NCBI GenBank assembly: GCA_001643675.2
Contig: LSRY02000052.1
Location: 434,001-498,000 of the forward strand
Direction of reading: 5' to 3'
Length of the DNA: 64,000 nucleotides
Origin: Monocercomonoides exilis PA203
Lineage: Eukaryota > Protista > Preaxostyla
A program made the translations under genes and the position numbers. How positions within the stretch are numbered: position 1 is the stretch's first letter; the number at the start of each line of letters is the position of its first letter. The notes beneath the pieces were generated by a model. The model did no database searches. It had not been told where the DNA came from and worked only from the letters and a program-made list of their open reading frames with translations. Below are positions 8,010-40,255 of the stretch, in pieces.

Positions 8010-8056
8010 AAGAAGAAGAAGAAGAAGAAGAAGAAGAAGAAGAAGAAGAAGAAGAA

Positions 8057-8089
<33 letters not shown>

Positions 8090-13299: not shown

Positions 13300-13439
13300 A
13301 CATTGACTAATTTAAACAAGAGAACTAAATGAATTAGGGTTAACGCTTAAAGAAATTTCTTTTCAATTTCATTTCATGAAGATATTTGGGCTTGAATATG
13401 AAGATAAAATTTCTTCATAATTCAAAAATTGTAAAAATA

Positions 13440-14009
13440 CAGATGTCGCACAAAATACCGGACAAGATCGCTTTCACAATAACTGAAAGAGAAACAATTC
13501 TGAAAATTTTCCTCAAATTTTATCTCATCAATGCAAACTCATTTGATATGCAAAACTTTCTTTATTGCTTCATTTGTGCTTAGAAAAAAGTTATTTTAAA
13601 AGTTTTGCATATCAAATGGTGGTAAATATTGACTTTCAAGCTTTTTTTGCACAAAGCACAAAAAAACTGCTTCACTCTTAACTTTATTTCGCTTTCTCAG
13701 ATTTCAAAATAAATTTGATTTTCATATCCTTTAACAGGTATCATTGAAATCAAAACAAAAAGTTTTCCAACATTTCACGAATTTCAAAAAATGAACACAT
13801 TTTTATTGCATTTTTTGTTCTCAAAAAGCTTACCAAAAGTGCGTTATTTTTCAATGAAAATACCTGAAGACAAATATTTTGTACCAAATGAGTTTGCATT
13901 GATGAGATAAAATTTGAGGAAAATTTTCAGAATTGTTCCTCTTTCAGTTATTGTGAAAGCGATCTTGTCCGGTATTTTGTGCGCTGTCCGGTATTTCATG
14001 CGATATCTG
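13440..14009. mobile_element. Tc1/mariner-type non-autonomous element (MITE) with ~105-bp TIRs and TA target duplication
   Basis: The ends read TA|CAGATGTCGCA... and ...TGCGATATCTG|TA. Bases 13447-13545 match the reverse complement of 13885-13983 with one mismatch. The right TIR has an extra copy of the AAATACCGGACA unit. There is no convincing internal coding sequence. Confidence 0.75.
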
Positions 14010-14747
14010 TATGTTGAATATCCACTTTTCAGTATTCATTCAAAAACATAAGAGACGATTATTCAAACCGAAATTGTTCACAAAAAAAGTCTGACTTCAA
14101 AAATAATTACACGAATATCCTTTTTTTAGTTTTTCAGAAAGAGAAATTTTGAAATTTATAATTTCATTTTGAAACTTTTGAATTCGAATGTCTTGCATTC
14201 ATATTCACTTGAACATATTTTATCCCCAGAAATTTGAAACACTTTTTTTGGGGACTTTGACATTCAACGAAGTGTGATTTGACTGGTTGGTTTGCAAAGT
14301 CGGAGAGCACTCGAAATGCTGCTAACACCAGAACATCCAACAAACACGATGTTTTGAATGTTTTGAGAATGAATCTGTGTCAACTTCAAAAAGGATTCTT
14401 CGATTGCTCTTGATTTTGAAATCAAATGGCATTTTTAAAACGACACATTCTTCAAGCTGTCTTTCAGAAAAAGAAAAAGAAAAAGAAAAGAATTAAATAT
14501 TGCAAACAATTTTTTGACTCACAGCCAAAGTGATCGCCAAAAAAAAAATTAAAGCAAATTTGAAATGACGTGGAGGATAAACTCCAGAATCAAAATAAAA
14601 TAAAAAATAAAATAAAATAAAAAATGAAATTAAAAATTTATGCAAATCAATAAATAAATAAATATTTATTTGAATGTTCGAATAAATATTCAGCTATCTA
14701 TTCGTCAAGTGCTCGCTTCCGAGGCAGCCACCCATTCCCACCCCATT

Positions 14748-16845
14748 CTATGGAGTGACTCTTCCCATATACCGCGGATACATGCACGCGTCTCGGATGT
14801 GGTACGTGTTCGTCAGCCAGCACAGAATTCGCTCCACCCCAAGTCCAAATCCGCTGTGTGGCGCTGTCCCATACTTCCTCAGGTCCAGATACCAGTTAAA
14901 TGGCTTCGGATCCATCTTCCTCTCTTCCAGCACTTTGCACAGCTCGTCGTAGTCTGAAATCCTGCTGCTTCCCCCAATAATTTCTCCAACCGTCGGCACA
15001 AGAACATCCACACTTTCTGTAAACAGCGGGTCGTCTTTGCATTTCTGATCAATAATTCCCATCAGCCCCCAGCCACACCAAAAATCAAAACAATGCAATA
15101 AACACAAAAACACGTTTTAAACACAATATTCATAATCGCGAAACTCTCAAAAAAAAAAAAGAAGAAGAAGAAAGTATTCACCACACCTTCATGTAAAATG
15201 CTTTTTGGCACGCTGGGAATCGCATCAGCATAACCGGCACGTTGATGGTGTCCACAAGAAACCGCTCTGGCTTCTCTGGAATGTCGTCGGGATATTCATA
15301 ATATGTTCCATCTTCTTTCTTCACATCGTGATCCTTCAGCCATCTGCATTAAAAAAAGAAGAAGAAGAAATAAAACATGTAATAAATAAATAAATAAATA
15401 AGCAAATAAAATATAGCCTGCTCTATCAAAACACATCCACCCACGAAAGTCTCATCCTCACGTGTTTCATACTGGATGGCTTCCATATATGTCATTCGCT
15501 TAAACGGTCGCTGCAGGGGCTTAAAGTCCTTGTTGAGCACGCTCAGATCGTCCTTGCACACCTCTATCATCTTGTCGATGACAGTGCATATGAAGTCTTC
15601 TATGAAGCCAAGAAACGCATCAAACTCCATAAACGGCATTTCTGCCTCAAGATGAGTGAACTCTGCCAAATGCCGCCTGGTTGTGCTCTTTTCTGCTCTG
15701 CAATTTCCACAAAATCAAGCGACAAGAAAGTTATAATGAATGAATGAATGAAACAATAGTTCGGTGAATAAATTGCGTAAAAACATTACAATTTGGTTTG
15801 TTTTGTTTTTTTAAAAAATAAAAAATAAATAATTAAAATAAAAAATAAATAATTAAAATAAAAAATAAAAACTCACTAATAAATCGATTAATCATCCAAA
15901 CCTATAGCTCGGCAGAATGCAGAACACATTTCCTAATGATTGTATCACAGTTTCCAAATACAGTTGCGACGATTCCGTCAGAAACGCTGTTTGGTCGTAA
16001 TACTTAATAGCAAACATTTCAGATCCGCCCTCGCAAGCATTCTTCACAATCGTTGGCGGCGTAACCTCCTCAAAGTTTTTGGAATAAAGATACTTTCGAT
16101 ATTCAAACAAAAGCCTCGACCGAACTCTCATTGTTCTCGTAAGAATGTCTCCTCTGTGCTGCAGATGGCGATAATTCATTCTTTGCTCAACCCCACTGTC
16201 AGGGTTCAACAGCTGCTCAAATTCTGCTGGGCATGGCCCAATCACTTCAACATAATCCAACAAAATCTCAAATGGCGATATTTCTGTTGTTCCTTTCTGC
16301 ACTGTGCCCCACGCATCGATGGTGCTTTCTCTCGTCAAGTTTACAATAACATCTGACTTTGCAAGCGCCCCGTGCGCAACACACTGAACTTGCTTCCCCA
16401 GATTTCTCAACGCAATAAAAACAAGGTTTTTCCCGTGCATCCGGATTGATGAAACCCACCCGAACGAATGTATCCGTTCCCCGAGATGCTCTGGAACGTC
16501 TCCAACCTTGACTTCGGGAGCTGTTGGATCGCTGTTGGTGATTTGGATTGAACTCGAAGGAGTCGAAGATGACGACGCTGCGTCTGATGGAGTCTCTGAA
16601 GACGACGCTTTCGCTTCTTCGCGCTTGGCTGCCTTCAATTCCTTTGTCAGATTGCGTCGGATTTCCTTTTCCTTCTTCTTCCTCCCGCTTGTAGTGACTT
16701 TTCCTCCTGTCGATATAATCTCTTCTTCATATTTCTTCAGCCCTTCTGCAAGCCTCTTCAAATACTCTGGCGGCAATTCCTCGAACGTCCCTTGCTTTTT
16801 CGTTTTTTCTTCCTCGATTTCAACCTTTGAATCCGCAGTTGACAT
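14748..16845 (-). CDS. NARS1: Asparaginyl-tRNA synthetase, cytosolic type, 4 exons (copy 1)
   Basis: OB-fold start ([19 protein letters not shown]), [10 protein letters not shown], spliced motif 2 [33 protein letters not shown], and motif 3 [22 protein letters not shown]. Three GT-AG introns restore the frame. Confidence 0.93.
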
Positions 16846-17073
16846 GAATTGTTATTCGATCAATTCCCATCATTTGATTATATTTCATTAATTTTTTTCT
16901 GGCCAGGTTTGCAAGAACAGAATGGCCCGCGGGCAGGGTGCTTCCTCTGCACACAAAACAAGCGAAACAGGAGATTGAATGAAAGGCAGCCATAATATTA
17001 GAAATATTTTCTGATTTTGCATGCTTCTTTGCTTTTGCGCGAAGTTTCCTTGTATTTGCGTATTGTTTTCGAT

Positions 17074-19540
17074 ATGAGTCTAATTTATTCTTCGGAGGCG
17101 TCGCACTATCGCTTGTGGCCGTTTTCTTCTGAAAATGCTGCTTCAAGCGTGCTGCAGTCTTCGTGTTCTTCTTCATCGTCTCATCCATTTGGAATAAGCG
17201 CCCCACACACCCAAGAGCCGTGCAGCAAACCCTTTTTGCCTTGCTTGATTCGATTCGGCCAGACAGCCCGAACCGAGGACGAAAGCTGCTGTGATGCGTC
17301 TCAGAATCATTGCTATGAAAAAACCGTTTCTCAAGGTTATCCGAAGTCGTGCTTCGTTGGCAGCAGTCAACTTCTTTCGTGTGGCCGGACGAGCACCAAG
17401 GATGACGATGGAGAAGGCTGGGGATGCGAAGCTTTATGGCAGGATAACTTTGAAGGAAAAAAGGATTTGAAGGATTTGAAGGATTTGCAGCCGAATGCGA
17501 AGAAGTTGCTGGAGTTTGAGCCTATTGTTGGGTCTCCTCCACTGACAAATATAGCCGCGCCTGGAGCTGGTGTCGAAGCATGGAACGAGATTTCTTGCCA
17601 ATCGACTGGGAAGAGGATCTGGAAAAAGGAAAGCAGGTGTTTTGAGTCACCTTCGAAGGGCAAGAGCGCAGAATTTCACGAACGCTTTTTTGTGGGGACG
17701 GTTCAAGGGTATGTTCAGGAGTGTGCAAAGGAGCTTGCTTGGCGGGAGGAAAAGAAAGAAAGCGAAATCCGAGATGAAAATGTGATTTCTCAAGGAAACA
17801 ACAACAGAATGGAGTCTCGTTCTGGCCCTGACGAGCACAACAGCCGCAGCACGAAGCAGTCGCCTGGGTTGGATTCTGTTGGGTCGTGGTCGTCTCTTTC
17901 GGACTCTTCATTGGAGGAGCATCTGGCGCAGAATTTTGTCGACTGGCAGCCAGTGGATGTGATGCAGAGGGAGAGATGCGCAGATGTGGACTTTACAGTG
18001 AGAGGAGAAAAGAGAACGGAAATAGCAGAGGAAAAGAAGGAGGAGATGGTTGGGCGGTGGCGGCGCTATGAGCTGGAGAGCAGAACGAGGGAGGATGGAG
18101 GTGTTTTGGCAGAGGGGGAAAGCAGCAGCAAAGAACAGGAGAAAGGAAAAGAAAAGTTGGAGGGAGAGAAAGATATGGTGAATGGGAATCGGGGGAGATT
18201 GAAGGTGATCAAAAGGGAAATCAAAGAGGCGAGAGAGTACTACAAAGTGTTTGGTGTTTGGGTTAGAAAAAACTGGGGTGGAGAAGAAGAAGAAGAAGTG
18301 CGGCTGTGGGAGGAAGCTGAAAGAAGGGTGAGAGAAAAAGAGAGAAAGGGATGTTGGAAGGGGGAAGAAGGAGATGCCATTTGCGCAACAATCGAAGAGC
18401 TGAAGACCAAAACGAAAGAAGGCGAAACAGGTAAAATGGAAGAAGAATCAGAAAAAGAAAAAAGAAAAAGAGGGGATGCTTCGGCTGCGGATTGAAAGAG
18501 AAGAAGCAAAGCAGAAAGAGAAGGAGTGGAAAGAAGCAATGAGCGATATGGAACGGTATGAGCTGAGTCTGCGAAAGGACTATGAAAAGAAGAGTAGAAT
18601 CGACTGCACAAAGGACAGTGATTGCCGTTCTTCACTTCGAGAGTGTCATGTTCTTTCTTTGCCCACGGAAGATTCAACACCATGTGAAAAGGGCAATGCG
18701 ACTGCGAGCTCAAGTGATCTGTGCAGAATATCCCCAGCGTTGCCATCTGGGCACTGGCAGGATGCGGCTGTAATTGCTCAAGCTGTCCTGAATTCATCAT
18801 CTTGCTCCCCTGCTCCCTTTATTCCCTTTGCTCCAGAGCCTGCTCCACCGTTTGCGAACTTGCTTGGACCTCGCTTGTGCTCCTTCAGAAATCAGCATTT
18901 AATCAATCAGAAATATTCATCAAATTTGACCATTGCTTCTCCTCGTGCAGCATTTGGGCCATCTCCATATTTTAACTCAGCAAATGATCCGTCATTCAAA
19001 TCCTTTGTTTTGTCATCGCTGCCTCGCCTCAAATGCTCTGGTGATGATATTTTCTGCCGGAATTCATTCAACCCTTGCTGTATTGAAAATCCACCATTTC
19101 CCGTCCAAAAGGAAGGAGCTTCTGAAGTATTTTCTGCAATGTCGAATACTTGCTCTGATGATAATATAAACGATTCGAAAGCGAGTGTCAAACACCTGTC
19201 AAGTGATGTTTCAATAGAAAATCATTGCATTACCACATCATTTATTTCATTTGCCTTTTTCAAAAGCAAAGTTCGGGCTAATCTCCTCAAGGCCGAACTT
19301 CGTGGGTTGCACGATAAAGGAAAATTGATCATGCGTGCTCGGCTGCTGTCTCAAACTCCTCCACAGATGAGATTTTTGTGGAGCTTTGATGAGCCTCCGG
19401 AGAACGTTAAAAAGGAGTGGAAAAGGTGGTTTTATCTGAAAGGAAGGTTCAAAGGTAAGTACTCAAAAAAACAGCTTGAAGCAATATTTTTAGAAAAGAA
19501 AAGCAAAGAAAATCGAAACTGCGAAGAAAAGCCAACCTGA
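17074..19540 (+). CDS. Hypothetical protein of a locally expanded family (~820 aa), with an apparent 1-nt frameshift in an A-run near 18470
   Basis: The 492-aa and 354-aa ORFs are fused in the mirror copy (690-aa ORF). ATG at 17074 (MSLIYSS). It shares the IKREIKEA...VFGVW...KNW...LWEEAE motif with the 40256 and 42806 ORFs. Confidence 0.65.
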
Positions 19541-20654
19541 AAGGGGAAAAAAAGATTTTTTTTAGTCATTAAGAGGTAAGATTGCTTATTAAAATAGAAG
19601 GTAGTAAATAATAATGCATTATTTTATATTTTTTGCGTTTTATTGATATGAAAGCTTTGTTTGACTTTAGTTGTTTTGAGTGAAAATTATTGTTGGTTAT
19701 TTGTATTTGTTTGACTTATGTTCGAATTATAATAGATGAAATTTGAATAGACTTGTTCAATTCAAATAAATCCATTTAATTCAAATAAAGTTAGTTTATT
19801 TTAAATGAAGTTGGTATATTTTAAATAGATATTTTACCATAACTATGAATTGTTTCGTAAAAAATTATAAATTCTGGATACAAACAAGTTTTTTCAAATA
19901 GTTCAACTTTTTAGACGAAACATCTATGTTGTTCCTGTAATTACTCATTCTTTCGATAAATATAGTTTTTTTACTGATAAACCATGAAAAACCCGTAACA
20001 AGTCTGTCTTTCTCGTAATAACCCTGTCTTTTTTGGTATTCATTTAAATGAAATTGTTGTGGGTTAATGAAAAAAACTTTCAAATCCATCAGTCAGCGAA
20101 TGAATTTCTATATTTGATTGATTTCATTTGTTTATCATGTTGTGAACATTCATTCTCGATGAAAAAATGACATAATTTTCGTTTATCAAAAGAAAAATTG
20201 GTCGAATATTTGAAATATTTTCCATTGTTTTTTGCAAATGTGTGAATGTTTTTTTGTTGTTTTTTTGAAAATCAAAAAATCTCCAGAAACATTATTATTT
20301 CTCAATGCGACAATGGTTTCCATTAAAAGAAATGCTCTTTGACAGATATCATGAGTTATTCTCGTAACAAATGCTTCTTATCCGTAATAACTGCGACTTA
20401 TTAGTAATAAGTTCATTATTCAGAAAAGAATCACACTCTCCGTAAAATATCTAATGAAGATTATTTATTCAAATTAACGCTGAAATCCATCTTGAAAATG
20501 TACTTAAAAAATTATATTTTATCTTTCAAAATTGCTAAATGGTACATTTGGTGTTGTTTTTTAAAGAATAAATAATTCAATTTTTAAAACAATTTTGATC
20601 TTTTAGTTTTTAATTGGAAATATGACAAAATTCCAACAAAATGAGCTTCAAAGT

Positions 20655-20817
20655 CAAAAAAAAAAAAAGAAAAAGAAAAAAAAAAAAAAAGAAAGAAAGA
20701 AAAGAAAAGAAAAGAAAAGAAAAGAAAAGAAAAGAAAAGAAAAGAAAAGAAAAGAAAAAGAAAAAAAAAAAGAAAAGAAAAGAAAGAAAAGAAAAAGAAA
20801 GAAAAGAAAAGAAAAAA
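20655..20817. repeat. A-rich/(AAAAG)n microsatellite, mirrored at ~33112-33260
   Basis: Directly visible. Its length differs between the two arms. Confidence 0.95.
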
Positions 20818-21779
20818 CTTGAGAGTTTAAGAAATCCTTTGCGACAATTAAATTTTTTGTGAATTGAGTCGGTCGAATTTGCAAAGGAATGTCGACAAAC
20901 TTCTAATTAATAAGAATAGATTGTTTTTTGATTAAAAACTTTTTTTCAGAAATAAATAATTGAAAATTATTAATTCTTTATATTCAAAAAAATAGTTTAA
21001 TATTTTTTTCACCATTATTTTGATTGTTCTGATGTCAAATTGAATTGAGGGATAGATCAAAATGTTTTTCCTGGAATAACTCTGTCAGGCTTTGTTTGCA
21101 CTCTGTTTTTCGGTGTACAAACTGTATGTACTTTGTTAATCTGTAATCTTGATCATAAATCGTCTTTGTCTTTATATTATCGTTAAATTTTTCAAATAAG
21201 ATATTCTTTTTATTTTATCTCTATTGTTATGCATAATTGTAATTATCATCAGTTAAACAGAACAAACGCAATCAAATTAATTTTGAAATTGGTTGCTTTG
21301 ATTTAATGAATCTTCAAACTTTAAGATAAAAAATCTCGAAAGTTTTTCACGAAAAAAGATCGCACTTTTAAGTTTTGTTTCTGATTTTCTTAGAATTGTT
21401 TCGTTATTTCCAGATATATTCTTTATTGTTAATTATTTTTTTAATTATTACATGGATTTAGTCTAACTTAATTCTTGTTATTATATTTTTTTACAAACAA
21501 TAGAAAAATTTTTCAAAAAATCAGTGTAGCTTTCAGTTGCTGACTCCTTTTTCAAATTTCTGATATTCCAGAATAAGTATTATTAATAAACTGGTTTGAA
21601 AAGTCAATTGATTGTAAATTTTTCGTTCTTTGTAAACGACAGAAATTTCGATCAAGCTTGTTCATGAAAAATTTAAACAAGAAGATATATATGTTGATTT
21701 GGGAAAGTGTTTAAAAAGAATATTATATTGACTATGTCTTATCTACTTTTAAATATTTATTTGTTAACTGTTTGTTGAA

Positions 21780-22837
21780 AAAATGCCTTTGTATGAATAT
21801 CGGGTTAGAAAATAAATGAGTTTTGGATCAAAAGAGTAGGTCCAAAGCTGGATGAGCTTGTATCGATGGAGATGATGCTGGAAAAGTTTCAAAAGAGAAA
21901 GGAGAACAATGTAGAAAGGAAAAAAATGAATAGATCGCGGAGAATATGTGAGAAAAATGTTATTCATTCAGAGACATAAAAACATTCGTTGAGTGAGAGC
22001 GGATCGACAGAATACATTCTGGGGAAAGATTCAGATAAGATTCCTGATTGGGCTTTAGAAAAGGAAGAGGAGGAAGAGACAAGGAAACGAACTCCCTCAC
22101 CTTCTATCTCATCCACTTCAACAACAGACACAGATGCAACATTTGTTCTTGGGGAGGATCTGTGTCCAACTTCTTCTTCCATGTCTAACTTAGTTGATTC
22201 AATAGCTTGTTCTTCGCATCATAAAAAATTGATTGTGAATCTGAAAGATTCACTGTTCATGCTGCTTCATGGGAGGAATAATACAAAGGAGATGACGATA
22301 GGAACGCTGGAAGAAAGAATGATAACTGCTTCCCAAATCCTGTTCTGGGTAACCAATGGAGCTCTTCATTCATTTGACGAAATGGAAAATCCACTCCAAT
22401 CATTGGACAATTTGAGTCCTCACATTGTGTTGTTCTCTGAGCACGTGGTGATTTGTATTGTGATGCAAACTGGGAGTTCTTCGTCAGAGGATTCGGGCAC
22501 ATCGTCTGTGTCATCGTTGAACATTGTCTCGTCATCATCAAATGTGTCGGTGATGAGCGAGAGGTTCACGGACTCGCTGCTGCCTTCGTCGGCGTTTGAG
22601 GATGAAGAAGGGGAAAAGGAGTATTTGCGGTGGAGGACGCTGGAGCTGCTGGATGGGAGGAAGAGGCATGCGACAAAGAAGTCGGTTGTGTTTTCGATGG
22701 GGATGATGCTGTTGGAGTGCATGACGCTGGCGATCCCGTTTGGGGGTGTGAAACACAGGCAGCTGGAGATACGATACGGAGAAAAACCAAAGAATATAGT
22801 AACTGATGAGCCGTTTCTTGAGATGGTTGCGAGATAA
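21780..22837 (+). pseudogene. Relic of a tyrosine-kinase-like C-terminal domain from an expanded gene family
   Basis: RWRTLELL...ATKKSVVFSMGMMLLECMTLAIPFG resembles kinase subdomains VIII-IX. The catalytic loop is degenerate (DNLSPHIVL). There is no ATG at the ORF start, and the upstream sequence looks coding but is interrupted by stops. Confidence 0.65.
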
Positions 22838-23765
22838 CAGAGGGAACTGATATTTCAAAATAACGAACAATGTCAAAAGAGTTATATCATTTTCAACAGT
22901 TATCAAAAAATTGTTTTTTATTTTCTTTCTTTATTATTTTTATTGTTATTTATTATTAATTTGTATCAATAACAGCACACCTTTTATATTAACATGACAT
23001 GTCCTGGTGAATTTTCTTTTTTGGTGAAATAATCGAGTTAGAGACATGTTTTCCAATCTTTCTTTAGAACTTGGAGAAGTTCTAATTTTTTTTAATTTTG
23101 CTTTCTGACATTAATTTTTATTCAATTTTTCTCACACATTGAAAACAATAATTGCACAAATATTTATCCATTAATGAACAATTAAAGCATATTGCGAAGA
23201 TAAATACACGAAAAAAACCAAACTGAATGAACAAAAGTGTTCTTTGTTGCAAAGAAACATTGATTTGATTTGGTGATATGAAAAAATACATTATCTCAGA
23301 AAATACATGGTTAACAGCAATTATTATCAGTTTTAAAAATCACTCGTCATTCAGAAGAATGAAAAACGTTCGAATTCGAAACGAAAGTTCCACGAACATT
23401 GTTGAACGCATCGATTTGGATGAATAGCAACTGAAAGCTAAGAAGATTATTTTATTTAAATAAATAAATAAATATATTTTCAAGTATTCATTCACAGTCT
23501 TCAGATGATTCAATAAAAAAATTAAGCATGCCTTGTTTTTGAAACTCATTTGTCTTCTTCTTTATTGCTTTATGCTTAAATTGATGTTAAATATAAAAAG
23601 TCAATATAAAAACATTTAGGAAATAAACAATACCAAACATTGTTCAGAAAACTGCAATATTTTGAAGGCATTATTATCAGGTTTCACACATTTCTCAGAA
23701 CTCATCACTGAAAAGTTAAAAGATTGCTTTTCCTTTCAAATCATTTAATCTTCAAAAAGATTCCT

Positions 23766-26749
23766 TTATAAAAGAAGCAATGCATTAAGTGTTTCTGGTG
23801 CAAGTGAGTACCTTCTGTCTCCAATAATTCGTCTTAAGCGAGAGAAAATTCTCTCGCAAGATGCTTCGCTGCAGGGAAACATTGTTAAAGAATAGCAAAT
23901 ATTGGCAAAAATTGTGGGAATAATTCCTTGCTTGCTGATTTCAGAATAGAAAACTTGAGAATTATGATGTTCCACATGCAGAGAGTTGTCCAGGAAAATT
24001 GAAGAAAAGAGAGCGTTGAGGCTATCAATATGGCAAGAAGCCTTCAGACATGAAATTTTAGAAAGATAATCATTGAATGCTGACTTTAATCTGAGAAACC
24101 AATCCATACTGATTGTTTGTTGGATTTTGAATAGAGATTTCTTGATTTGTTCTGCTGACATTGTTCTATCAATGACTGGAAATTCATTTGCACCAAGTTC
24201 TTCAACGTCTTTGTCATCTTCTGAAGTGCTTTCAACATTATCTGAGCATTTGTCTTCCTTTTTTTCAGCTGAATTTGATTGCATGTCATGATCTTCAAGT
24301 TGTGTATGTTTTTTTCTTGTATCGTAAAATGATGACTCTTGCTCACATCCTACACAAAAAGGAGAAAGAACCTCGAATTCATCATCAGCTGCATTGATTT
24401 CTGCTTGAATAATGCCTGCTTCGTCGAAATCAATTTCATAGAGGTTTTCATCTTCATTTGAAATTGCTTCTTTTTCAATAAGTGAATTTTCTGTCAAAAG
24501 AGTTAATAAATGCAGCAAACTGTTGTTTGGTGTATAGATTGGTGAAGTCGATGATATGGAGTGCAAATCTTTTGGAAGCGGCTGAAGTTGAACTTGTGTT
24601 TCGGTAATTGCTTCTGCTATTTTATCTTTTTCTGGGCTTATAAGTTGGAGAGCAGAATAAAAAGTCTCAACCGATAACGGAGAAGAGAATGTTGGGTGAG
24701 GAAAATTTGTTGGAAAATTTGTTTTTTCACTCTTCGAAAAAAATGAAAGCGCATATTGTTTGTCTGTAAAAAATCCATTTTCGCTGTTCTTATCTTCCAT
24801 TTCATGAGAAAGTGTTCGTAACTTTTTCTGTTGATTCTTTGTGAACACAGTATTTGGAATTTCTTTAGAAGGACAAAGAAAGACAGAGTTACTTGGCATA
24901 ATATCTTTTGTGGATTGAATAGATGTGTCGCAACGCATCCTTTGAATTTGAGTTTGATCTGAATCCTTTGAAAATGCAGATGAACATTTGAATAGCCTGT
25001 ATTTTTCTTTCAATGTCATAAGTTCTGTTGAATAAGACTTTGAAAGCAAACCGTTTCTATAGTCAAGTATACTAATTGGAGTTAAGGAATGAGCCAAAGC
25101 GATTTGATCTCCTCGTTCTTTCCCTAAAAATGAATTGAACAGTTGGATTACAATAAAGCAAACTCCATATTGCCAATCGGGGGAAGAAAATTCCTCAAGA
25201 TCTTGCAACCACATGTATTGCGCAATGGATTTCAGAACATTGGGAAACACATCGCCAAGTTTTGTTTCATCGTTTTCAAATAACAACTGCAGTTGTTTCA
25301 GTGGTGCAAGTAATAATTCACATCGGATCACATCATCAATTTTTTCTTTGGATAAAAAATCTGTAAATGACGTATTGTGAAAATTTTTTGTTATGAAACA
25401 ACATATTTCGAAAAGACAAAGCCACCTTGTTTCTATGAAAGAGGGGCATTTCGGTAAAAACGGGTTCTTTGTTGATGATTTTCTTGTAAACTTTGAAAAT
25501 GATGTAATTTCTTCCTTTAATTGAACGAAAAATGAATAATCCTTAAAAAGGCGTGTGACAATTAAATTGATTAAGTGGTTACAACAATAAACAAATATCG
25601 GTGAAATTTTCTTCGGTGTTTCTTCGACTGAGCACAACTTCGAATGATCTGCAAAGCTTTGAATTGCGAGTTTTTGTGGAAGCAAGCCGTCCGTGCAAAA
25701 ACAGCGCACTTCTCCTTTCAAATTCGAAACTTCTCCAATAATATCATTAGCCAGATAGAAATAATCAGTGGTTGTGAAACATGCCTTTTCAATTTTCCAG
25801 AAAAATGGAGATGCCTTTGTCTGCAACGGAACAATTGTGATGACAGTGTATTTTTTTCCAGCAACTATCCCTCCGTCCATCATTACGGCAACCATTGAAT
25901 TGAATATTTTTGCATTTCGTTCAGAAATTCTTTTCTTTCCTTCTTCTTGAATAAGTGCTGTCAGCTTTCTATATGTGAGAGTTGGAAATATGGTCGTAGG
26001 TGAAAGAGATGGATTATGTTGAGATACAATTATTAATGAAGATATAAATTTATTGAATTCATTGGAGTAAGCAGAAAGAAAAGCAATGTTGCAATGACCA
26101 ATTAAATGTAAATATTGCTCAACCAACGAATCAAATTGAAAATGAGTTGGAACAATTTTCTTTGCTGACGCTTCAGACAATCTTGAAGATGGATGAAACT
26201 TGAAATATGGTAAAATTGTTGATGCAGTTGTCAATGCGCATCGATGATTCACAACTTTATCGCATCCTTTTCGTCCGGAGATGGCACAATTGATTCCTTG
26301 TTTGCTGTTTGGACACAAGAAATAAATATGTCCATCTTTTTTAAGAGATCCATCTGTCTTGACAGGAGTATATGCCAACCAAAGCTTTCCATCGCATGTT
26401 TCAAAGTGAATTTTACCAATTTCTTCTCCAGTATTTTTTGGGTGCTTGTAGACTAGATTTTAAGCAGAAAAATGCAAATTAATCTGAGTGATATTTTATA
26501 AGAAACATACAATTTCCGCCATTGGATGATTTTGTTCTTGTTAATTCCACGAAAGTGCATTCATAGTTCTTTAATTCCTCAACTTTTCTTTCAAACGCTT
26601 CAAGCTGCAAAGATGAATCATATTAAAAAATAAATAATTATACATGCTGGGGTAAAATGAGATTGCCAAACAATATTTTTCGCTGACATGCATCTTTGTA
26701 ATTCAATCGACAATTCTTTGATAAAGTTATTTTTAGTCATTTCACTCAT
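23766..26749 (-). mobile_element. hAT-superfamily DDE transposase-like gene, intact copy, probably with 2 short 5' introns
   Basis: Motifs: VMMDG (D1), FCTDG (D2), CCNHLINL (CxxH), ETRW, and a C-terminal hAT dimerisation-type segment PCSEASCERIFSRLRRIIGDRRYSLAPETLNALLL (E). A Cys/His cluster near the N-terminus may be a zinc finger. A GTATGT...TAG intron extends the ORF upstream, and the predicted ATG is at 26749. Confidence 0.88.
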
Positions 26750-26757
26750 TTTTCAAA

Positions 26758-26809
26758 TGATCTCGACAAACCGACTGATCTCAACAGACAGACTGATCTA
26801 GACATGATC
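26758..26809. repeat. 18-bp direct repeats TGATCTCGACAAACCGAC / TGATCTCAACAGACAGAC / TGATCTAGACA next to the transposase start, mirrored at 27125-27176
   Basis: Directly visible. These may be subterminal transposase-binding repeats or a promoter element. Confidence 0.6.
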
Positions 26810-27184
26810 AAGTCGAAAAGATCTGTCGATTTGACAATAAAAAGATATTTTTGCATTTTCATGATTTATTATTCATTATATTAATTCTCAAAATAAATAG
26901 TGAAAAAAAAATAATAGAAATTATATGTTATCCAATTTTTTAAATTTTCCAAATTGTTAAGTTTCAAAAGTGTTTTGAATTTCATTGTCTGTCAAATTGT
27001 CGAATCAATTTGACGGAGTCTGTATGTCGCAAAGGCTTAATTTTATGAATGACTAAGATGAATAATAAATCATGAAAATGCAAAAATATCTTTTTATTGT
27101 CAAATCGACAGATCTTTTCGACTTGATCATGTCTAGATCAGTCTGTCTGTTGAGATCAGTCGGTTTGTCGAGATCATTTGAAAA

Positions 27185-30165: not shown

Positions 30166-31091
30166 AGGAATCTTTTTGAAGATTAAATGATTTGAAAGGA
30201 AAAGCAATCTTTTAACTTTTCAGTGATGAGTTCTGAGAAATGTGTGAAACCTGATAATAATGCCTTCAAAATATTGCAGTTTTCTGAACAATGTTTGGTA
30301 TTGTTTATTTCCTAAATGTTTTTATATTGACTTTTTATATTTAACATCAATTTAAGCATAAAGCAATAAAGAAGAAGACAAATGAGTTTCAAAAACAAGG
30401 CATGCTTAATTTTTTTATTGAATCATCTGAAGACTGTGAATGAATACTTGAAAATATATTTATTTATTTATTTAAATAAAATAATCTTCTTAGCTTTCAG
30501 TTGCTATTCATCCAAATCGATGCGTTCAACAATGTTCGTGGAACTTTCGTTTCGAATTCGAACGTTTTTCATTCTTCTGAATGACGAGTGATTTTTAAAA
30601 CTGATAATAATTGCTGTTAACCATGTATTTTCTGAGATAATGTATTTTTTCATATCACCAAATCAAATCAATGTTTCTTTGCAACAAAGAACACTTTTGT
30701 TCATTCAGTTTGGTTTTTTCGTGTATTTATCTTCGCAATATGCTTTAATTGTTCATTAATGGATAAATATTTGTGCAATTATTGTTTTCAATGTGTGAGA
30801 AAAATTGAATAAAAATTAATGTCAGAAAGCAAAATTAAAAAAATTAGAACTTCTCCAAGTTCTAAAGAAAGATTGGAAAACATGTCTCTAACTCGATTAT
30901 TTCACCAAAAAAGAAAATTCACCAGGACATGTCATGTTAATATAAAAGGTGTGCTGTTATTGATACAAATTAATAATAAATAACAATAAAAATAATAAAG
31001 AAAGAAAATAAAAAACAATTTTTTGATAACTGTTGAAAATGATATAACTCTTTTGACATTGTTCGTTATTTTGAAATATCAGTTCCCTCTG

Positions 31092-32150
31092 TTATCTCGC
31101 AACCATCTCAAGAAACGGCTCATCAGTTACTATATTCTTTGGTTTTTCTCCGTATCGTATCTCCAGCTGCCTGTGTTTCACACCCCCAAACGGGATCGCC
31201 AGCGTCATGCACTCCAACAGCATCATCCCCATCGAAAACACAACCGACTTCTTTGTCGCATGCCTCTTCCTCCCATCCAGCAGCTCCAGCGTCCTCCACC
31301 GCAAATACTCCTTTTCCCCTTCTTCATCCTCAAACGCCGACGAAGGCAGCAGCGAGTCCGTGAACCTCTCGCTCATCACCGACACATTTGATGATGACGA
31401 GACAATGTTCAACGATGACACAGACGATGTGCCCGAATCCTCTGACGAAGAACTCCCAGTTTGCATCACAATACAAATCACCACGTGCTCAGAGAACAAC
31501 ACAATGTGAGGACTCAAATTGTCCAATGATTGGAGTGGATTTTCCATTTCGTCAAATGAATGAAGAGCTCCATTGGTTACCCAGAACAGGATTTGGGAAG
31601 CAGTTATCATTCTTTCTTCCAGCGTTCCTATCGTCATCTCCTTTGTATTATTCCTCCCATGAAGCAGCATGAACAGTGAATCTTTCAGATTCACAATCAA
31701 TTTTTTATGATGCGAAGAACAAGCTATTGAATCAACTAAGTTAGACATGGAAGAAGAAGTTGGACACAGATCCTCCCCAAGAACAAATGTTGCATCTGTG
31801 TCTGTTGTTGAAGTGGATGAGATAGAAGGTGAGGGAGTTCGTTTCCTTGTCTCTTCCTCCTCTTCCTTTTCTAAAGCCCAATCAGGAATCTTATCTGAAT
31901 CTTTCCCCAGAATGTATTCTGTCGATCCGCTCTCACTCAACGAATGTTTTTATGTCTCTGAATGAATAACATTTTTCTCACATATTCTCCGCGATCTATT
32001 CATTTTTTTTCCTTTCTACATTGTTCTCCTTTCTCTTTTGAAACTTTTCCAGCATCATCTCCATCGATACAAGCTCATCCAGCTTTGGACCTACTCTTTT
32101 GATCCAAAACTCATTTATTTTCTAACCCGATATTCATACAAAGGCATTTT
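31092..32150 (-). pseudogene. Kinase-like relic, mirror copy
   Basis: The 282-aa ORF is identical to 21989-22837. Confidence 0.65.
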
Positions 32151-33201
32151 TTCAACAAACAGTTAACAAATAAATATTTAAAAGTAGATAAGACATAGTC
32201 AATATAATATTCTTTTTAAACACTTTCCCAAATCAACATATATATCTTCTTGTTTAAATTTTTCATGAACAAGCTTGATCGAAATTTCTGTCGTTTACAA
32301 AGAACGAAAAATTTACAATCAATTGACTTTTCAAACCAGTTTATTAATAATACTTATTCTGGAATATCAGAAATTTGAAAAAGGAGTCAGCAACTGAAAG
32401 CTACACTGATTTTTTGAAAAATTTTTCTATTGTTTGTAAAAAAATATAATAACAAGAATTAAGTTAGACTAAATCCATGTAATAATTAAAAAAATAATTA
32501 ACAATAAAGAATATATCTGGAAATAACGAAACAATTCTAAGAAAATCAGAAACAAAACTTAAAAGTGCGATCTTTTTCGTGAAAAACTTTCGAGATTTTT
32601 TATCTTAAAGTTTGAAGATTCATTAAATCAAAGCAACCAATTTCAAAATTAATTTGATTGCGTTTGTTCTGTTTAACTGATGATAATTACAATTATGCAT
32701 AACAATAGAGATAAAATAAAAAGAATATCTTATTTGAAAAATTTAACGATAATATAAAGACAAAGACGATTTATGATCAAGATTACAGATTAACAAAGTA
32801 CATACAGTTTGTACACCGAAAAACAGAGTGCAAACAAAGCCTGACAGAGTTATTCCAGGAAAAACATTTTGATCTATCCCTCAATTCAATTTGACATCAG
32901 AACAATCAAAATAATGGTGAAAAAAATATTAAACTATTTTTTTGAATATAAAGAATTAATAATTTTCAATTATTTATTTCTGAAAAAAAGTTTTTAATCA
33001 AAAAACAATCTATTCTTATTAATTAGAAGTTTGTCGACATTCCTTTGCAAATTCGACCGACTCAATTCACAAAAAATTTAATTGTCGCAAAGGATTTCTT
33101 AAACTCTCAAGTTTTTTCTTTTCTTTTCTTTCTTTTTTCTTTTCTTTTCTTTTCTTTTCTTTTTTTTTTCTTTTTCTTTTCTTTTCTTTTCTTTTCTTTT
33201 C

Positions 33202-33260
<59 letters not shown>

Positions 33261-34372
33261 GACTTTGAAGCTCATTTTGTTGGAATTTTGTCATATTTCC
33301 AATTAAAAACTAAAAGATCAAAATTGTTTTAAAAATTGAATTATTTATTCTTTAAAAAACAACACCAAATGTACCATTTAGCAATTTTGAAAGATAAAAT
33401 ATAATTTTTAAGTACATTTTCAAGATGGATTTCAGCGTTAATTTGAATAAATAATCTTCATTAGATATTTTACGGAGAGTGTGATTCTTTTCTGAATAAT
33501 GAACTTATTACTAATAAGTCGCAGTTATTACGGATAAGAAGCATTTGTTACGAGAATAACTCATGATATCTGTCAAAGAGCATTTCTTTTAATGGAAACC
33601 ATTGTCGCATTGAGAAATAATAATGTTTCTGGAGATTTTTTGATTTTCAAAAAAACAACAAAAAAACATTCACACATTTGCAAAAAACAATGGAAAATAT
33701 TTCAAATATTCGACCAATTTTTCTTTTGATAAACGAAAATTATGTCATTTTTTCATCGAGAATGAATGTTCACAACATGATAAACAAATGAAATCAATCA
33801 AATATAGAAATTCATTCGCTGACTGATGGATTTGAAAGTTTTTTTCATTAACCCACAACAATTTCATTTAAATGAATACCAAAAAAGACAGGGTTATTAC
33901 GAGAAAGACAGACTTGTTACGGGTTTTTCATGGTTTATCAGTAAAAAAACTATATTTATCGAAAGAATGAGTAATTACAGGAACAACATAGATGTTTCGT
34001 CTAAAAAGTTGAACTATTTGAAAAAACTTGTTTGTATCCAGAATTTATAATTTTTTACGAAACAATTCATAGTTATGGTAAAATATCTATTTAAAATATA
34101 CCAACTTCATTTAAAATAAACTAACTTTATTTGAATTAAATGGATTTATTTGAATTGAACAAGTCTATTCAAATTTCATCTATTATAATTCGAACATAAG
34201 TCAAACAAATACAAATAACCAACAATAATTTTCACTCAAAACAACTAAAGTCAAACAAAGCTTTCATATCAATAAAACGCAAAAAATATAAAATAATGCA
34301 TTATTATTTACTACCTTCTATTTTAATAAGCAATCTTACCTCTTAATGACTAAAAAAATCTTTTTTCCCCTT

Positions 34373-36837
34373 TCAGGTTGGCTTTTCTTCGCAGTTTCGA
34401 TTTTCTTTGCTTTTCTTTTCTAAAAATATTGCTTCAAGCTGTTTTTTTGAGTACTTACCTTTGAACCTTCCTTTCAGATAAAACCACCTTTTCCACTCCT
34501 TTTTAACGTTCTCCGGAGGCTCATCAAAGCTCCACAAAAATCTCATCTGTGGAGGAGTTTGAGACAGCAGCCGAGCACGCATGATCAATTTTCCTTTATC
34601 GTGCAACCCACGAAGTTCGGCCTTGAGGAGATTAGCCCGAACTTTGCTTTTGAAAAAGGCAAATGAAATAAATGATGTGGTAATGCAATGATTTTCTATT
34701 GAAACATCACTTGACAGGTGTTTGACACTCGCTTTCGAATCGTTTATATTATCATCAGAGCAAGTATTCGACATTGCAGAAAATACTTCAGAAGCTCCTT
34801 CCTTTTGGACGGGAAATGGTGGATTTTCAATACAGCAAGGGTTGAATGAATTCCGGCAGAAAATATCATCACCAGAGCATTTGAGGCGAGGCAGCGATGA
34901 CAAAACAAAGGATTTGAATGACGGATCATTTGCTGAGTTAAAATATGGAGATGGCCCAAATGCTGCACGAGGAGAAGCAATGGTCAAATTTGATGAATAT
35001 TTCTGATTGATTAAATGCTGATTTCTGAAGGAGCACAAGCGAGGTCCAAGCAAGTTCGCAAACGGTGGAGCAGGCTCTGGAGCAAAGGGAATAAAGGGAG
35101 CAGGGGAGCAAGATGATGAATTCAGGACAGCTTGAGCAATTACAGCCGCATCCTGCCAGTGCCCAGATGGCAACGCTGGGGATATTCTGCACAGATCACT
35201 TGAGCTCGCAGTCGCATTGCCCTTTTCACATGGTGTTGAATCTTCCGTGGGCAAAGAAAGAACATGACACTCTCGAAGTGAAGAACGGCAATCACTGTCC
35301 TTTGTGCAGTCGATTCTACTCTTCTTTTCATAGTCCTTTCGCAGACTCAGCTCATACCGTTCCATATCGCTCATTGCTTCTTTCCACTCCTTCTCTTTCT
35401 GCTTTGCTTCTTCTCTTTCAATCCGCAGCCGAAGCATCCCCTCTTTTTCTTTTTCTTTTTCTGATTCTTCTTCCATTTTACCTGTTTCGCCTTCTTTCGT
35501 TTTGGTCTTCAGCTCTTCGATTGTTGCGCAAATGGCATCTCCTTCTTCCCCCTTCCAACATCCCTTTCTCTCTTTTTCTCTCACCCTTCTTTCAGCTTCC
35601 TCCCACAGCCGCACTTCTTCTTCTTCTTCTCCACCCCAGTTTTTTCTAACCCAAACACCAAACACTTTGTAGTACTCTCTCGCCTCTTTGATTTCCCTTT
35701 TGATCACCTTCAATCTCCCCCGATTCCCATTCACCATATCTTTCTCTCCCTCCAACTTTTCTTTTCCTTTCTCCTGTTCTTTGCTGCTGCTTTCCCCCTC
35801 TGCCAAAACACCTCCATCCTCCCTCGTTCTGCTCTCCAGCTCATAGCGCCGCCACCGCCCAACCATCTCCTCCTTCTTTTCCTCTGCTATTTCCGTTCTC
35901 TTTTCTCCTCTCACTGTAAAGTCCACATCTGCGCATCTCTCCCTCTGCATCACATCCACTGGCTGCCAGTCGACAAAATTCTGCGCCAGATGCTCCTCCA
36001 ATGAAGAGTCCGAAAGAGACGACCACGACCCAACAGAATCCAACCCAGGCGACTGCTTCGTGCTGCGGCTGTTGTGCTCGTCAGGGCCAGAACGAGACTC
36101 CATTCTGTTGTTGTTTCCTTGAGAAATCACATTTTCATCTCGGATTTCGCTTTCTTTCTTTTCCTCCCGCCAAGCAAGCTCCTTTGCACACTCCTGAACA
36201 TACCCTTGAACCGTCCCCACAAAAAAGCGTTCGTGAAATTCTGCGCTCTTGCCCTTCGAAGGTGACTCAAAACACCTGCTTTCCTTTTTCCAGATCCTCT
36301 TCCCAGTCGATTGGCAAGAAATCTCGTTCCATGCTTCGACACCAGCTCCAGGCGCGGCTATATTTGTCAGTGGAGGAGACCCAACAATAGGCTCAAACTC
36401 CAGCAACTTCTTCGCATTCGGCTGCAAATCCTTCAAATCCTTCAAATCCTTTTTTCCTTCAAAGTTATCCTGCCATAAAGCTTCGCATCCCCAGCCTTCT
36501 CCATCGTCATCCTTGGTGCTCGTCCGGCCACACGAAAGAAGTTGACTGCTGCCAACGAAGCACGACTTCGGATAACCTTGAGAAACGGTTTTTCATAGCA
36601 ATGATTCTGAGACGCATCACAGCAGCTTTCGTCCTCGGTTCGGGCTGTCTGGCCGAATCGAATCAAGCAAGGCAAAAAGGGTTTGCTGCACGGCTCTTGG
36701 GTGTGTGGGGCGCTTATTCCAAATGGATGAGACGATGAAGAAGAACACGAAGACTGCAGCACGCTTGAAGCAGCATTTTCAGAAGAAAACGGCCACAAGC
36801 GATAGTGCGACGCCTCCGAAGAATAAATTAGACTCAT
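34373..36837 (-). CDS. Hypothetical family protein, mirror copy, with a frameshift in an A-run near 36590
   Basis: A 690-aa ORF plus a 150-aa ORF. The lesion is at a different site from the left copy, so the consensus of the two is intact. Confidence 0.65.
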
Positions 36838-37065
36838 ATCGAAAACAATACGCAAATACAAGGAAACTTCGCGCAAAAGCAAAGAAGCATGCAAAATCAG
36901 AAAATATTTCTAATATTATGGCTGCCTTTCATTCAATCTCCTGTTTCGCTTGTTTTGTGTGCAGAGGAAGCACCCTGCCCGCGGGCCATTCTGTTCTTGC
37001 AAACCTGGCCAGAAAAAAATTAATGAAATATAATCAAATGATGGGAATTGATCGAATAACAATTC

Positions 37066-39163
37066 ATGTCAACTGCGGATTCAAAGGTTGAAATCGAGGA
37101 AGAAAAAACGAAAAAGCAAGGGACGTTCGAGGAATTGCCGCCAGAGTATTTGAAGAGGCTTGCAGAAGGGCTGAAGAAATATGAAGAAGAGATTATATCG
37201 ACAGGAGGAAAAGTCACTACAAGCGGGAGGAAGAAGAAGGAAAAGGAAATCCGACGCAATCTGACAAAGGAATTGAAGGCAGCCAAGCGCGAAGAAGCGA
37301 AAGCGTCGTCTTCAGAGACTCCATCAGACGCAGCGTCGTCATCTTCGACTCCTTCGAGTTCAATCCAAATCACCAACAGCGATCCAACAGCTCCCGAAGT
37401 CAAGGTTGGAGACGTTCCAGAGCATCTCGGGGAACGGATACATTCGTTCGGGTGGGTTTCATCAATCCGGATGCACGGGAAAAACCTTGTTTTTATTGCG
37501 TTGAGAAATCTGGGGAAGCAAGTTCAGTGTGTTGCGCACGGGGCGCTTGCAAAGTCAGATGTTATTGTAAACTTGACGAGAGAAAGCACCATCGATGCGT
37601 GGGGCACAGTGCAGAAAGGAACAACAGAAATATCGCCATTTGAGATTTTGTTGGATTATGTTGAAGTGATTGGGCCATGCCCAGCAGAATTTGAGCAGCT
37701 GTTGAACCCTGACAGTGGGGTTGAGCAAAGAATGAATTATCGCCATCTGCAGCACAGAGGAGACATTCTTACGAGAACAATGAGAGTTCGGTCGAGGCTT
37801 TTGTTTGAATATCGAAAGTATCTTTATTCCAAAAACTTTGAGGAGGTTACGCCGCCAACGATTGTGAAGAATGCTTGCGAGGGCGGATCTGAAATGTTTG
37901 CTATTAAGTATTACGACCAAACAGCGTTTCTGACGGAATCGTCGCAACTGTATTTGGAAACTGTGATACAATCATTAGGAAATGTGTTCTGCATTCTGCC
38001 GAGCTATAGGTTTGGATGATTAATCGATTTATTAGTGAGTTTTTATTTTTTATTTTAATTATTTATTTTTTATTTTAATTATTTATTTTTTATTTTTTAA
38101 AAAAACAAAACAAACCAAATTGTAATGTTTTTACGCAATTTATTCACCGAACTATTGTTTCATTCATTCATTCATTATAACTTTCTTGTCGCTTGATTTT
38201 GTGGAAATTGCAGAGCAGAAAAGAGCACAACCAGGCGGCATTTGGCAGAGTTCACTCATCTTGAGGCAGAAATGCCGTTTATGGAGTTTGATGCGTTTCT
38301 TGGCTTCATAGAAGACTTCATATGCACTGTCATCGACAAGATGATAGAGGTGTGCAAGGACGATCTGAGCGTGCTCAACAAGGACTTTAAGCCCCTGCAG
38401 CGACCGTTTAAGCGAATGACATATATGGAAGCCATCCAGTATGAAACACGTGAGGATGAGACTTTCGTGGGTGGATGTGTTTTGATAGAGCAGGCTATAT
38501 TTTATTTGCTTATTTATTTATTTATTTATTACATGTTTTATTTCTTCTTCTTCTTTTTTTAATGCAGATGGCTGAAGGATCACGATGTGAAGAAAGAAGA
38601 TGGAACATATTATGAATATCCCGACGACATTCCAGAGAAGCCAGAGCGGTTTCTTGTGGACACCATCAACGTGCCGGTTATGCTGATGCGATTCCCAGCG
38701 TGCCAAAAAGCATTTTACATGAAGGTGTGGTGAATACTTTCTTCTTCTTCTTTTTTTTTTTTGAGAGTTTCGCGATTATGAATATTGTGTTTAAAACGTG
38801 TTTTTGTGTTTATTGCATTGTTTTGATTTTGGTGTGGCTGGGGGGCTGATGGGAATTATTGATCAGAAATGCAAAGACGACCCGCTGTTTACAGAAAGTG
38901 TGGATGTTCTTGTGCCGACGGTTGGAGAAATTATTGGGGGAAGCAGCAGGATTTCAGACTACGACGAGCTGTGCAAAGTGCTGGAAGAGAGGAAGATGGA
39001 TCCGAAGCCATTTAACTGGTATCTGGACCTGAGGAAGTATGGGACAGCGCCACACAGCGGATTTGGACTTGGGGTGGAGCGAATTCTGTGCTGGCTGACG
39101 AACACGTACCACATCCGAGACGCGTGCATGTATCCGCGGTATATGGGAAGAGTCACTCCATAG
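37066..39163 (+). CDS. NARS1: Asparaginyl-tRNA synthetase, cytosolic type, 4 exons (copy 2)
   Basis: Mirror of 14748-16845. Introns at 38010-38213, 38439-38567 and ~38725-38866. Stop TAG at 39163. Confidence 0.93.
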
Positions 39164-40255
39164 AATGGGGTGGGAATGGGTGGCTGCCTCGGAAGCGAGC
39201 ACTTGACGAATAGATAGCTGAATATTTATTCGAACATTCAAATAAATATTTATTTATTTATTGATTTGCATAAATTTTTAATTTCATTTTTTATTTTATT
39301 TTATTTTTTATTTTATTTTGATTCTGGAGTTTATCCTCCACGTCATTTCAAATTTGCTTTAATTTTTTTTTTGGCGATCACTTTGGCTGTGAGTCAAAAA
39401 ATTGTTTGCAATATTTAATTCTTTTCTTTTTCTTTTTCTTTTTCTGAAAGACAGCTTGAAGAATGTGTCGTTTTAAAAATGCCATTTGATTTCAAAATCA
39501 AGAGCAATCGAAGAATCCTTTTTGAAGTTGACACAGATTCATTCTCAAAACATTCAAAACATCGTGTTTGTTGGATGTTCTGGTGTTAGCAGCATTTCGA
39601 GTGCTCTCCGACTTTGCAAACCAACCAGTCAAATCACACTTCGTTGAATGTCAAAGTCCCCAAAAAAAGTGTTTCAAATTTCTGGGGATAAAATATGTTC
39701 AAATGAATATGAATGCAAGACATTCGAATTCAAAAGTTTCAAAATGAAATTATAAATTTCAAAATTCCTCTTTCTGAAAAACATAAAACATAAGATATCT
39801 TCGATTTTCAAAAACTGAGGAGAAAATTTTTCATTTCTATCATTTTCAAATAAATGAAATATCATTATTAATAAATTTCAAAATGAAACATATGAAGCAT
39901 ATTTTGATAACGTTGTGACATGTTAAAGGAAAAATTGGGAATAAATTCAAAAGAGAAAACAAACAAGTGCGAAAAGTTCAATGGATGTAATTTCCATAAT
40001 AATAATTTTTGTTGTTTTTGCTGTTATTTATTTTGCAATGATATTGAAAGGATGAGCTTTAATACGGGAAATTTTAAGGTTCATAATTTATTTGTTTTTT
40101 ATTTTCATTTTTTATAATTTATTATTTCACGGTAACAAAAATTTTCTGTGATTTATATTTTGTGAAACACAACAAATCTGACAAAATTTTAAAAGAAATT
40201 ATATGCTGCAAACGAAACTTCTAATTTTCCTCTTGAATCATCAAGATTTCTGTCT

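Follow-up and report, generated by a model that had tools for sequence, protein, structure and literature searches.

Head-to-head hAT elements at the axis of a gene-bearing palindrome in Monocercomonoides exilis

Results

A palindromic duplication in the nuclear genome

The DNA studied here, called the window throughout, is a stretch of 64,000 nt from the protist Monocercomonoides exilis PA203 (positions 434001-498000 of the 633,478-bp contig C50, in an assembly of 82,301,135 bp and 101 contigs). It holds a palindromic segmental duplication of the nuclear genome, which is genuine and apparently young, and in which two DNA transposons of the hAT superfamily lie head-to-head at the symmetry axis. 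Its favoured origin, with a probability of roughly 0.6, is a break at the joint between the two hAT sequences that was repaired by fold-back, break-induced copying outwards. Each arm consists of about 6.7 kb of host DNA and a 6.2-kb hAT element. On the contig the palindrome occupies positions 448,129-473,782, and the nearer contig end is about 160 kb away. Its main parts are the following (window coordinates):

14129-26876, plus strand: left arm (12,748 nt), made of host DNA (14129-20831) and positions 1-6045 of the hAT element
26877-27057, no strand: non-identical centre (181 nt), made of the last 163 bp of the left hAT copy (26877-27039) and 18 nt of the right copy (27040-27057)
27058-39782, minus strand: right arm (12,725 nt), the reverse complement of the left arm
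20832-27039, minus strand: complete hAT-family element of 6,208 bp, with 14-bp terminal inverted repeats (AAATCCTTTGCGAC on the left, the reverse complement of TAAGCCTTTGCGAC on the right) and its transposase gene on the minus strand
27040-33097, plus strand: inverted hAT copy without its last 145 bp, whose left tip (33097) remains attached to host DNA

Near-identical arms of about 12.7 kb spanning 14129-39782 had been claimed in a first-pass annotation of the window, and both coordinates and identity were reproduced. The arms aligned (blastn) with 99.71% identity over 12,766 columns, with 8 mismatches and 25 gap openings. The 181 bp between them had been described as a unique spacer; the length was right, the uniqueness was not, as the entire centre is hAT sequence.

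Only four clean substitutions were found inside the arms (at 14144, 14208, 20669 and 25587), against about 13 single-base homopolymer indels, the majority of which are deletions in the right arm. In addition, a (GAAAA)n tract at about 20691 differs in length by 14 nt between the arms. As the same annotation had noted for most of them, nearly all differences are 1-nt homopolymer changes. These are typical of unpolished Nanopore repeats and say little about real divergence. The assembly was made from unamplified DNA sheared with g-TUBE and sequenced with the Nanopore LSK108 kit. It was built with Canu 1.8 (corMinCoverage=0) and polished first with Nanopolish and then ten times with Pilon on TruSeq PCR-free MiSeq reads, which gave 82.3 Mbp in 101 contigs with an N50 of 1,379,369 bp (PMC8767320). 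According to its authors multi-copy regions were polished less well (PMC8767320), and the homopolymer differences between the arms fit this description. The indels interrupt reading frames at different sites in the left and right arms, and because these uncorrected frameshifts differ, gene annotation inside the arms is unreliable.

The element belongs to the hAT superfamily

A genome search with the arm sequence identified the inner 6.2 kb of either arm as a transposon with at least 16 further full-length copies, at 82-95% identity. The ends of the element were set by aligning five family copies together with their flanks. The family has 14-bp terminal inverted repeats (TAATCCTTTGCGAC and TAAGCCTTTGCGAC) that are conserved across copies, and three other copies are bordered by perfect 8-bp target duplications: ACGAAATA (contig C61), ACTAAACA (C91) and AATGAAGA (C20). 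The transposase ends in a hAT dimerisation domain (PF05699, residues 833-869 of 870, 25.8 bits against a cut-off of 21.4, E 9e-06). Dimerisation domain, 8-bp target duplications and terminal repeats together identify the element as a hAT transposon. Beyond the C-terminal domain, no Pfam or NCBIfam match was obtained for an RNase-H-like DDE catalytic core or a BED zinc finger, and a comparison of the transposase with the sequences of the Protein Data Bank (PDB) gave no match at E<=1. The two genes are:

23766-26749, minus strand: left transposase gene, which opens with a short exon at the ATG 26749 and continues in an 870-codon open reading frame (ORF; 26378-23766) ending in the hAT dimerisation domain
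27185-30165, plus strand: right transposase gene, the frame of which is broken in the assembly by 1-nt homopolymer deletions at 27597, 28388 and 28404

Divergent hAT transposase genes at the axis, with outward-pointing starts at 26749 and 27185, had been predicted beforehand. The domain match and the head-to-head arrangement of the elements bear this out, and an ATG was found at both positions, each the start of a short exon that is in frame with the long transposase ORF. The left ORF is intact.

In an alignment of the last ~200 bp of the family copies at least two lineages were distinguished, with a hypervariable subterminal segment lying between two conserved blocks. Three copies are mosaics (on C62, on C8 and in the window), a pattern which suggests that family copies may recombine with one another.

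A segment inside the element (21965-22770) was also found in at least 30 separate copies elsewhere in the genome, at 74-81% identity and with five of them on contig C47. It contains an ORF of 282 codons (21989-22837; mirror 31092-31940) and matched no protein family. The transposon may carry it as a repeat that was captured or nested.

The central joint lies at the exact tip of the left element

A transposon at the symmetry axis was the central claim of the first-pass annotation, and the element tip indeed falls exactly on the joint:

27039/27040, no strand: central joint, where the terminal base of the left element is fused to an internal site of the inverted copy
27040-27057, minus strand: 18-nt tract that continues the right copy in register and belongs to the A-type lineage (17/18 identical to the copy on C61); the left copy differs from it at 6/18 positions

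No bases are shared across the joint, which consequently shows no microhomology. Only three element tips occur within the window (20832, 27039 and 33097). The right copy therefore has a left tip but no right tip: it stops 145 bp before its own end and abuts the last base of the left copy.

The left and right copies are identical except in the 18 nt beside the joint, where each version corresponds to a different family lineage. Past the arm border the two sequences are thus inverted homeologues (12/18) from two lineages. Divergence of the left copy from A-type copies is 5-7% over 26700-26876, 23-31% over 26877-26970 and 6-12% over the last 69 bp. The jump from 5-7% to 23-31% falls exactly on the arm border, which is also where a conserved block (...TTTTATTATTCAT) ends and the hypervariable subterminal segment begins. 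A donor for the 163-bp left end was not found elsewhere in the genome, the best matches being 85-87% identical. Just inside the border both arms carry a private variant, an A at 26864/27070, that is present in no other family copy.

These differences also bear on the age of the palindrome. It could be old, with arms kept identical by arm-to-arm gene conversion from which only the edges escape and diverge; near-identity would then be uninformative on age. Two of the four substitutions do lie within 80 bp of the outer border, and 6/18 positions differ at the inner border. However, the 18-nt inner differences match existing family lineages and do not resemble random decay, and the clustering at the edges may reflect better polishing where reads anchor in unique DNA. 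Moreover, conversion would account for the maintenance of the arms but not for their origin. As an explanation of the locus it is considered highly improbable.

The centre is present in unitigs at about single-copy depth

It had been cautioned that the palindrome could be a fold-back read or an assembly artefact. Logan unitigs were compared with 6 kb around the centre for four runs, all of which contain the centre stretch. The runs belong to one sample of one study, probably the source of the assembly, and their library types, which are not on record, were deduced from contig statistics.

In run X2 a single unbranched unitig of 241 nt (depth 77.5) covers 26847-27087 without any difference. It consists of the whole centre and exactly 30 nt of each arm, and both spacer junctions, for which independent read support had been demanded, lie inside it. 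It ends exactly 30 nt inside both arms, as expected of a graph with k=31, which must branch there if the arms are reverse complements. For comparison, a 533-nt unitig that leads from the end of another, certainly single-copy family member into unique flank has a depth of about 101 in the same run. This places the centre at about single-copy depth. As the X2 unitig is unbranched, no second flank follows 27039 at appreciable depth; among the loose ends listed, which leave aside 76 weaker ones, no alternative flank after this position was well supported.

The longest contig of X2 measures 151,814 nt and can only be the genome of a bacterium from the mixed culture. Because of this bacterial-size DNA contig, and because homopolymer-deletion variants are absent, X2 was taken as short-read DNA, most likely from the MiSeq PCR-free library. 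Run X1, with 5.2 million very short unitigs and many one-base deletions, is probably Nanopore data. It contains a 155-nt unitig over 26933-27087, again without differences. In run X3 the depth of arm-identical unitigs was 17-23 versus 12-13 for diverged single copies (about 1.5-1.9x), which fits two arm copies weakly. Arm-specific support at 25587 was also sought, and was confounded by other family copies. The transposon part of the arms also has several positions (e.g. 27938 G>A) at which every aligned unitig disagrees with the assembly base; either these unitigs come from other family copies or the consensus is wrong in both arms.

The central joint is real and not the artefact of a single fold-back molecule, since it is spanned by an unbranched unitig of about single-copy depth in a run read as short-read. 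The artefact caveat is thereby largely answered for the centre; the outer joints are taken from the assembly.

A partial artefact would be that the central joint is real and that one 12.7-kb arm, or an outer joint, was made by Canu from fold-back or chimeric Nanopore reads. LSK108 reads corrected permissively (corMinCoverage=0) could produce such a structure, and arms that differ mainly by homopolymer errors, with outer joints known from the assembly, are what it would look like. Against this stand the single unbranched unitig with both joints and no other flank, the private A present in both of its 30-nt arm stubs, and the raised depth of the arm unitigs in X3. Furthermore, the palindrome lies 160 kb from the contig end between different unique flanks, so that two independent false joints in unique DNA would be needed, and its host part occurs in the genome only as these two copies. 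For these reasons the outer parts are trusted as well, the structure as a whole is very probably real, and a partial artefact is distinctly unlikely.

Two complete host genes are present in both arms

The host part of the arms comprises the outer ~6.7 kb. Copying of host genes had been claimed from the start, and two such genes were found whole in both arms:

14748-16845, minus strand: complete asparaginyl-tRNA-synthetase-like (AsnRS-like) gene, in blocks 16845-15892, 15669-15349 and 15113-14748 (mirror 37066-39163, plus strand)
17017-19540, plus strand: gene of ~840 codons without a family match (mirror 34373-36894, minus strand)
14128/14129, no strand: left outer border, 116 bp past a MITE-like cluster (13041-14012; MITE, miniature inverted-repeat transposable element); not a transposon tip
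39782/39783, no strand: right outer border, beyond which the flank is unique in the genome; not a transposon tip

Together the three coding blocks of the AsnRS-like gene account for positions 11-454 of a 455-position profile. Different homopolymer indels interrupt the ~840-codon gene in the two arms, near 18458 in the left and near 36442 in the right.

The host part also contains a dispersed repeat of 0.63 kb (19820-20456, and its mirror), with a 97% identical copy at C25:1117356-1117984 and others at 82-87%. It is followed by the (GAAAA)n tract (~20653-20815). The MITE-like cluster just left of the palindrome is nested. A unit of ~270 bp (13612-13889), of which more than 40 copies exist at 82-87%, lies within inverted repeats of ~108 bp (13447-13555 and 13877-13983), and a second unit (13041-13306) has a 96% identical copy on contig C5.

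Outside the palindrome the window holds three long intron-free ORFs with strongly skewed base composition and internal repeats: 45404-51877 (plus strand, 2157 codons), which has two CCHC zinc knuckles at its end, and 54031-59001 (minus strand, 1656 codons) and 5788-9054 (minus strand, 1088 codons), both without a family match. The ORFs 9605-10198 and 10615-11958 encode leucine-rich-repeat proteins.

A second palindrome has a foldback element on the axis

The first-pass annotation had advised a scan for further palindromes centred on this transposase family. None was present among the family copies found in the genome search: all other matches are solitary, with no adjacent inverted partner.

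A second palindrome of another type was found 46 kb downstream on the same contig. Its arms (from 512,175 or before to 520,055, and from 520,123 to 528,000 or beyond) enclose a spacer of 67 nt. They stop short of 508,000 and measure at least 7.9 kb and less than ~12 kb, which makes the palindrome 15.8 kb long or longer. Where they were compared, over 5.8 kb, their identity is 100%. On the axis sits one copy of a ~1.07-kb foldback element that is abundant in the genome and stands alone at tens of other loci. As cargo the arms carry a gene of 5.8 kb that belongs to a large family.

Two further inverted pairs were noticed. One lies on C50 at the edge of the examined stretch (578,001-579,356 and 585,139-586,493), with 99.8-99.9% identity and inner ends 5.8 kb apart. 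The members of the other, C32:690263-696062 (minus strand) and 699614-705413 (plus strand), match the same query with equal scores, and their inner ends are 3.5 kb apart. Both pairs are probably palindromes too. Large palindromes whose axis is occupied by an inverted-repeat element thus seem to be a trait of the M. exilis genome, and the hAT locus would be the variant seeded by a hAT pair.

Discussion

Origin of the palindrome

The joint at the exact last base of a hAT element indicates that an end made by transposase, or a true insertion, was involved. In addition, the left tip of the right copy is still joined to the same host DNA as in the left arm, which implies that the host genes were copied by DNA synthesis and were not carried along by transposition.

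The order of events that is preferred (the estimate of roughly 0.6 applies to the repair pathway) would be as follows. Two hAT sequences would first have come to lie head-to-head, because the tip of one element was inserted into another copy or because transposase cut at a tip. In the preferred version the target would have been a resident A-type copy, into which a hAT element with its own type of end was inserted head-to-head, 145 bp before the end of the resident; only the last 163 bp of this inserted element would survive. A break in the inserted element would then have been repaired with the inverted resident copy as template. Synthesis would have been primed in the conserved block that borders the hypervariable segment on its inner side, and would have run outwards, across the entire element and then across 6.7 kb of host DNA with the neighbouring genes. 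At one outer border the new end would then have been joined to unrelated DNA. The outcome would be a second, mirror-image copy of two complete host genes. In a close variant that needs one element only, transposase would cut at 27039 and the inverted sister would be joined after an 18-nt detour, in register, on an ectopic A-type copy. Fold-back, break-induced synthesis would explain the exact tip, the switch of lineage at the arm border and the copied genes together. Priming by fold-back at breaks near natural inverted repeats is established in yeast (Al-Zain et al., 2023, PMC10622511).

Several observations weigh against this account. The fold-back stem available at the axis is only 18 nt long and has 6 mismatches, which include both 3'-terminal bases. 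The supposed earlier head-to-head insertion has left no testable target duplication, and the initiating double-strand break is deduced solely from the transposon tip at the joint. No significant microhomology or extended homeology was detected at the outer borders, where 91/1500 random AT-rich pairs scored as well (p ~0.06). Finally, the full length of the arms and both outer joints come from the Canu assembly only, and the read evidence from one sample and study with library types deduced.

A more direct role of transposase was considered as well: a one-ended or alternative (Ac/Ds-like, sister-chromatid) transposition of the left element's right tip into the sister copy, followed by re-replication and fusion of aborted forks. 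Strand transfer would leave a joint at the exact terminal base without microhomology, as is seen here, the left transposase ORF is intact, and re-replication of maize Ac yields head-to-head Ac fragments with flanking DNA copied over at least 10 kb (bioRxiv 10.1101/2020.01.07.897926). However, the target beside the tip is not the sequence of the sister, since 6/18 positions differ from the left copy and another lineage is matched. The right element was not mobilised, as its left tip remains on host DNA. Only one tip was engaged, and the flanks of the left element (AGTTTAAG and ATTTTATG) differ from each other and form no 8-bp target duplication. This explanation is therefore regarded as unlikely.

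The first-pass annotation had likewise proposed a transposon-triggered fold-back duplication. The palindrome, the head-to-head hAT elements, the copied genes and the tip at the joint agree with the proposal, but the two hAT-specific routes it had named do not. Sister-chromatid or reversed-end transposition predicts tips and 8-bp duplications at the borders. The outer borders are not tips and the target duplication is missing; with the right copy's left tip on host DNA, this route was rejected as the sole cause. A flank hairpinned upon hAT excision would give a palindrome of the flank without the element, and here the element sits in both arms and the axis is not a joint of flank to flank. Rejected too was a nested insertion of one hAT element in another with both halves of the target kept, as there is no fourth tip in the window and the left flank is (GAAAA)n, not hAT.

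Significance

The preferred fold-back pathway is of a type already known. Of interest are the joint at base level, the duplication of complete housekeeping genes and the palindromes themselves, which are unreported for M. exilis: the word stem "palindrom" does not occur in the assembly paper, and neither does the word "inverted" (PMC8767320). The locus illustrates, down to the single base, how whole host genes can be duplicated in mirror image with a DNA transposon as the seed. The organism is a deep-branching protist that lacks mitochondria, and an essential-type aminoacyl-tRNA synthetase is among the genes copied. If upheld by raw reads, the palindromes of M. exilis would help to explain the 7-Mb gain over the older assembly, the large fraction of "unclassified repeat" and the expanded gene families.

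A more tentative idea, and a rather doubtful one, is that genes of M. exilis are duplicated systematically and recurrently, maybe at dozens of loci, through large palindromes for which transposon ends or foldback elements act as seeds, and that read-through of the hAT pair gives a hairpin RNA that silences the family. In maize, Mu killer and Ac killer work in this way.

Comparison with known systems

Fold-back (template-complement) chimeras of Nanopore sequencing, and the palindromic contigs to which they give rise, resemble the locus in their near-perfect palindromy and in arm differences that are homopolymer errors. They differ from it in that the joint of the M. exilis palindrome recurs at single-copy depth in a second run that appears to be short-read, its 181-nt centre is structured, and it lies within a contig between unique flanks.

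The palindromes P1-P8 of the human Y chromosome are maintained by arm-to-arm gene conversion. They have in common with the present locus gene-bearing arms of very high identity (given as >99.9%) and a short non-duplicated centre. The M. exilis arms, in contrast, are 10-100x smaller, belong to a protist, flank an axis of transposon sequence and give no sign of conversion.

Alternative transposition of maize Ac/Ds with re-replication is the nearest transposon-specific precedent. It comprises sister-chromatid and reversed-end events, composite insertions and the 'Ac killer' inverted repeats (PMC3744419; bioRxiv 10.1101/2020.01.07.897926). The hAT superfamily, head-to-head full and partial copies, about 10 kb of copied host flank and a breakpoint at the exact tip are shared. 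The precedent fails in three respects: the 8-bp target duplication, how many tips were engaged, and the outer borders. In Ac/Ds events borders lie at tips with an 8-bp duplication, whereas here only 27039 is a tip and 14128/9 and 39782/3 are not. Two tips, from separate or sister elements, are engaged together in Ac/Ds; here it is one. The two left tips continue into host flanks that are identical, and the copied element has thus remained attached.

Fold-back inverted duplications, or large DNA palindromes, are primed by inverted repeats at double-strand breaks and are known from yeast, from Tetrahymena rDNA and from mammalian gene amplification; palindromes of this kind are reportedly the subject of older work by Butler/Yao, Tanaka and Rattray. 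Unlike the typical cases, which are dicentric or terminal rearrangements, the M. exilis palindrome is interstitial and small (12.7-kb arms), the seed homology at its axis is only 18 nt and imperfect, and one side of the loop is an exact transposon tip. As in those cases, long inverted arms surround a short loop, the arms run far past the seed repeat into unique genes, and a second, unrelated joint ends the duplication. The inverted homology that bounds the loop, here the head-to-head hAT sequences, may likewise be older than the duplication.

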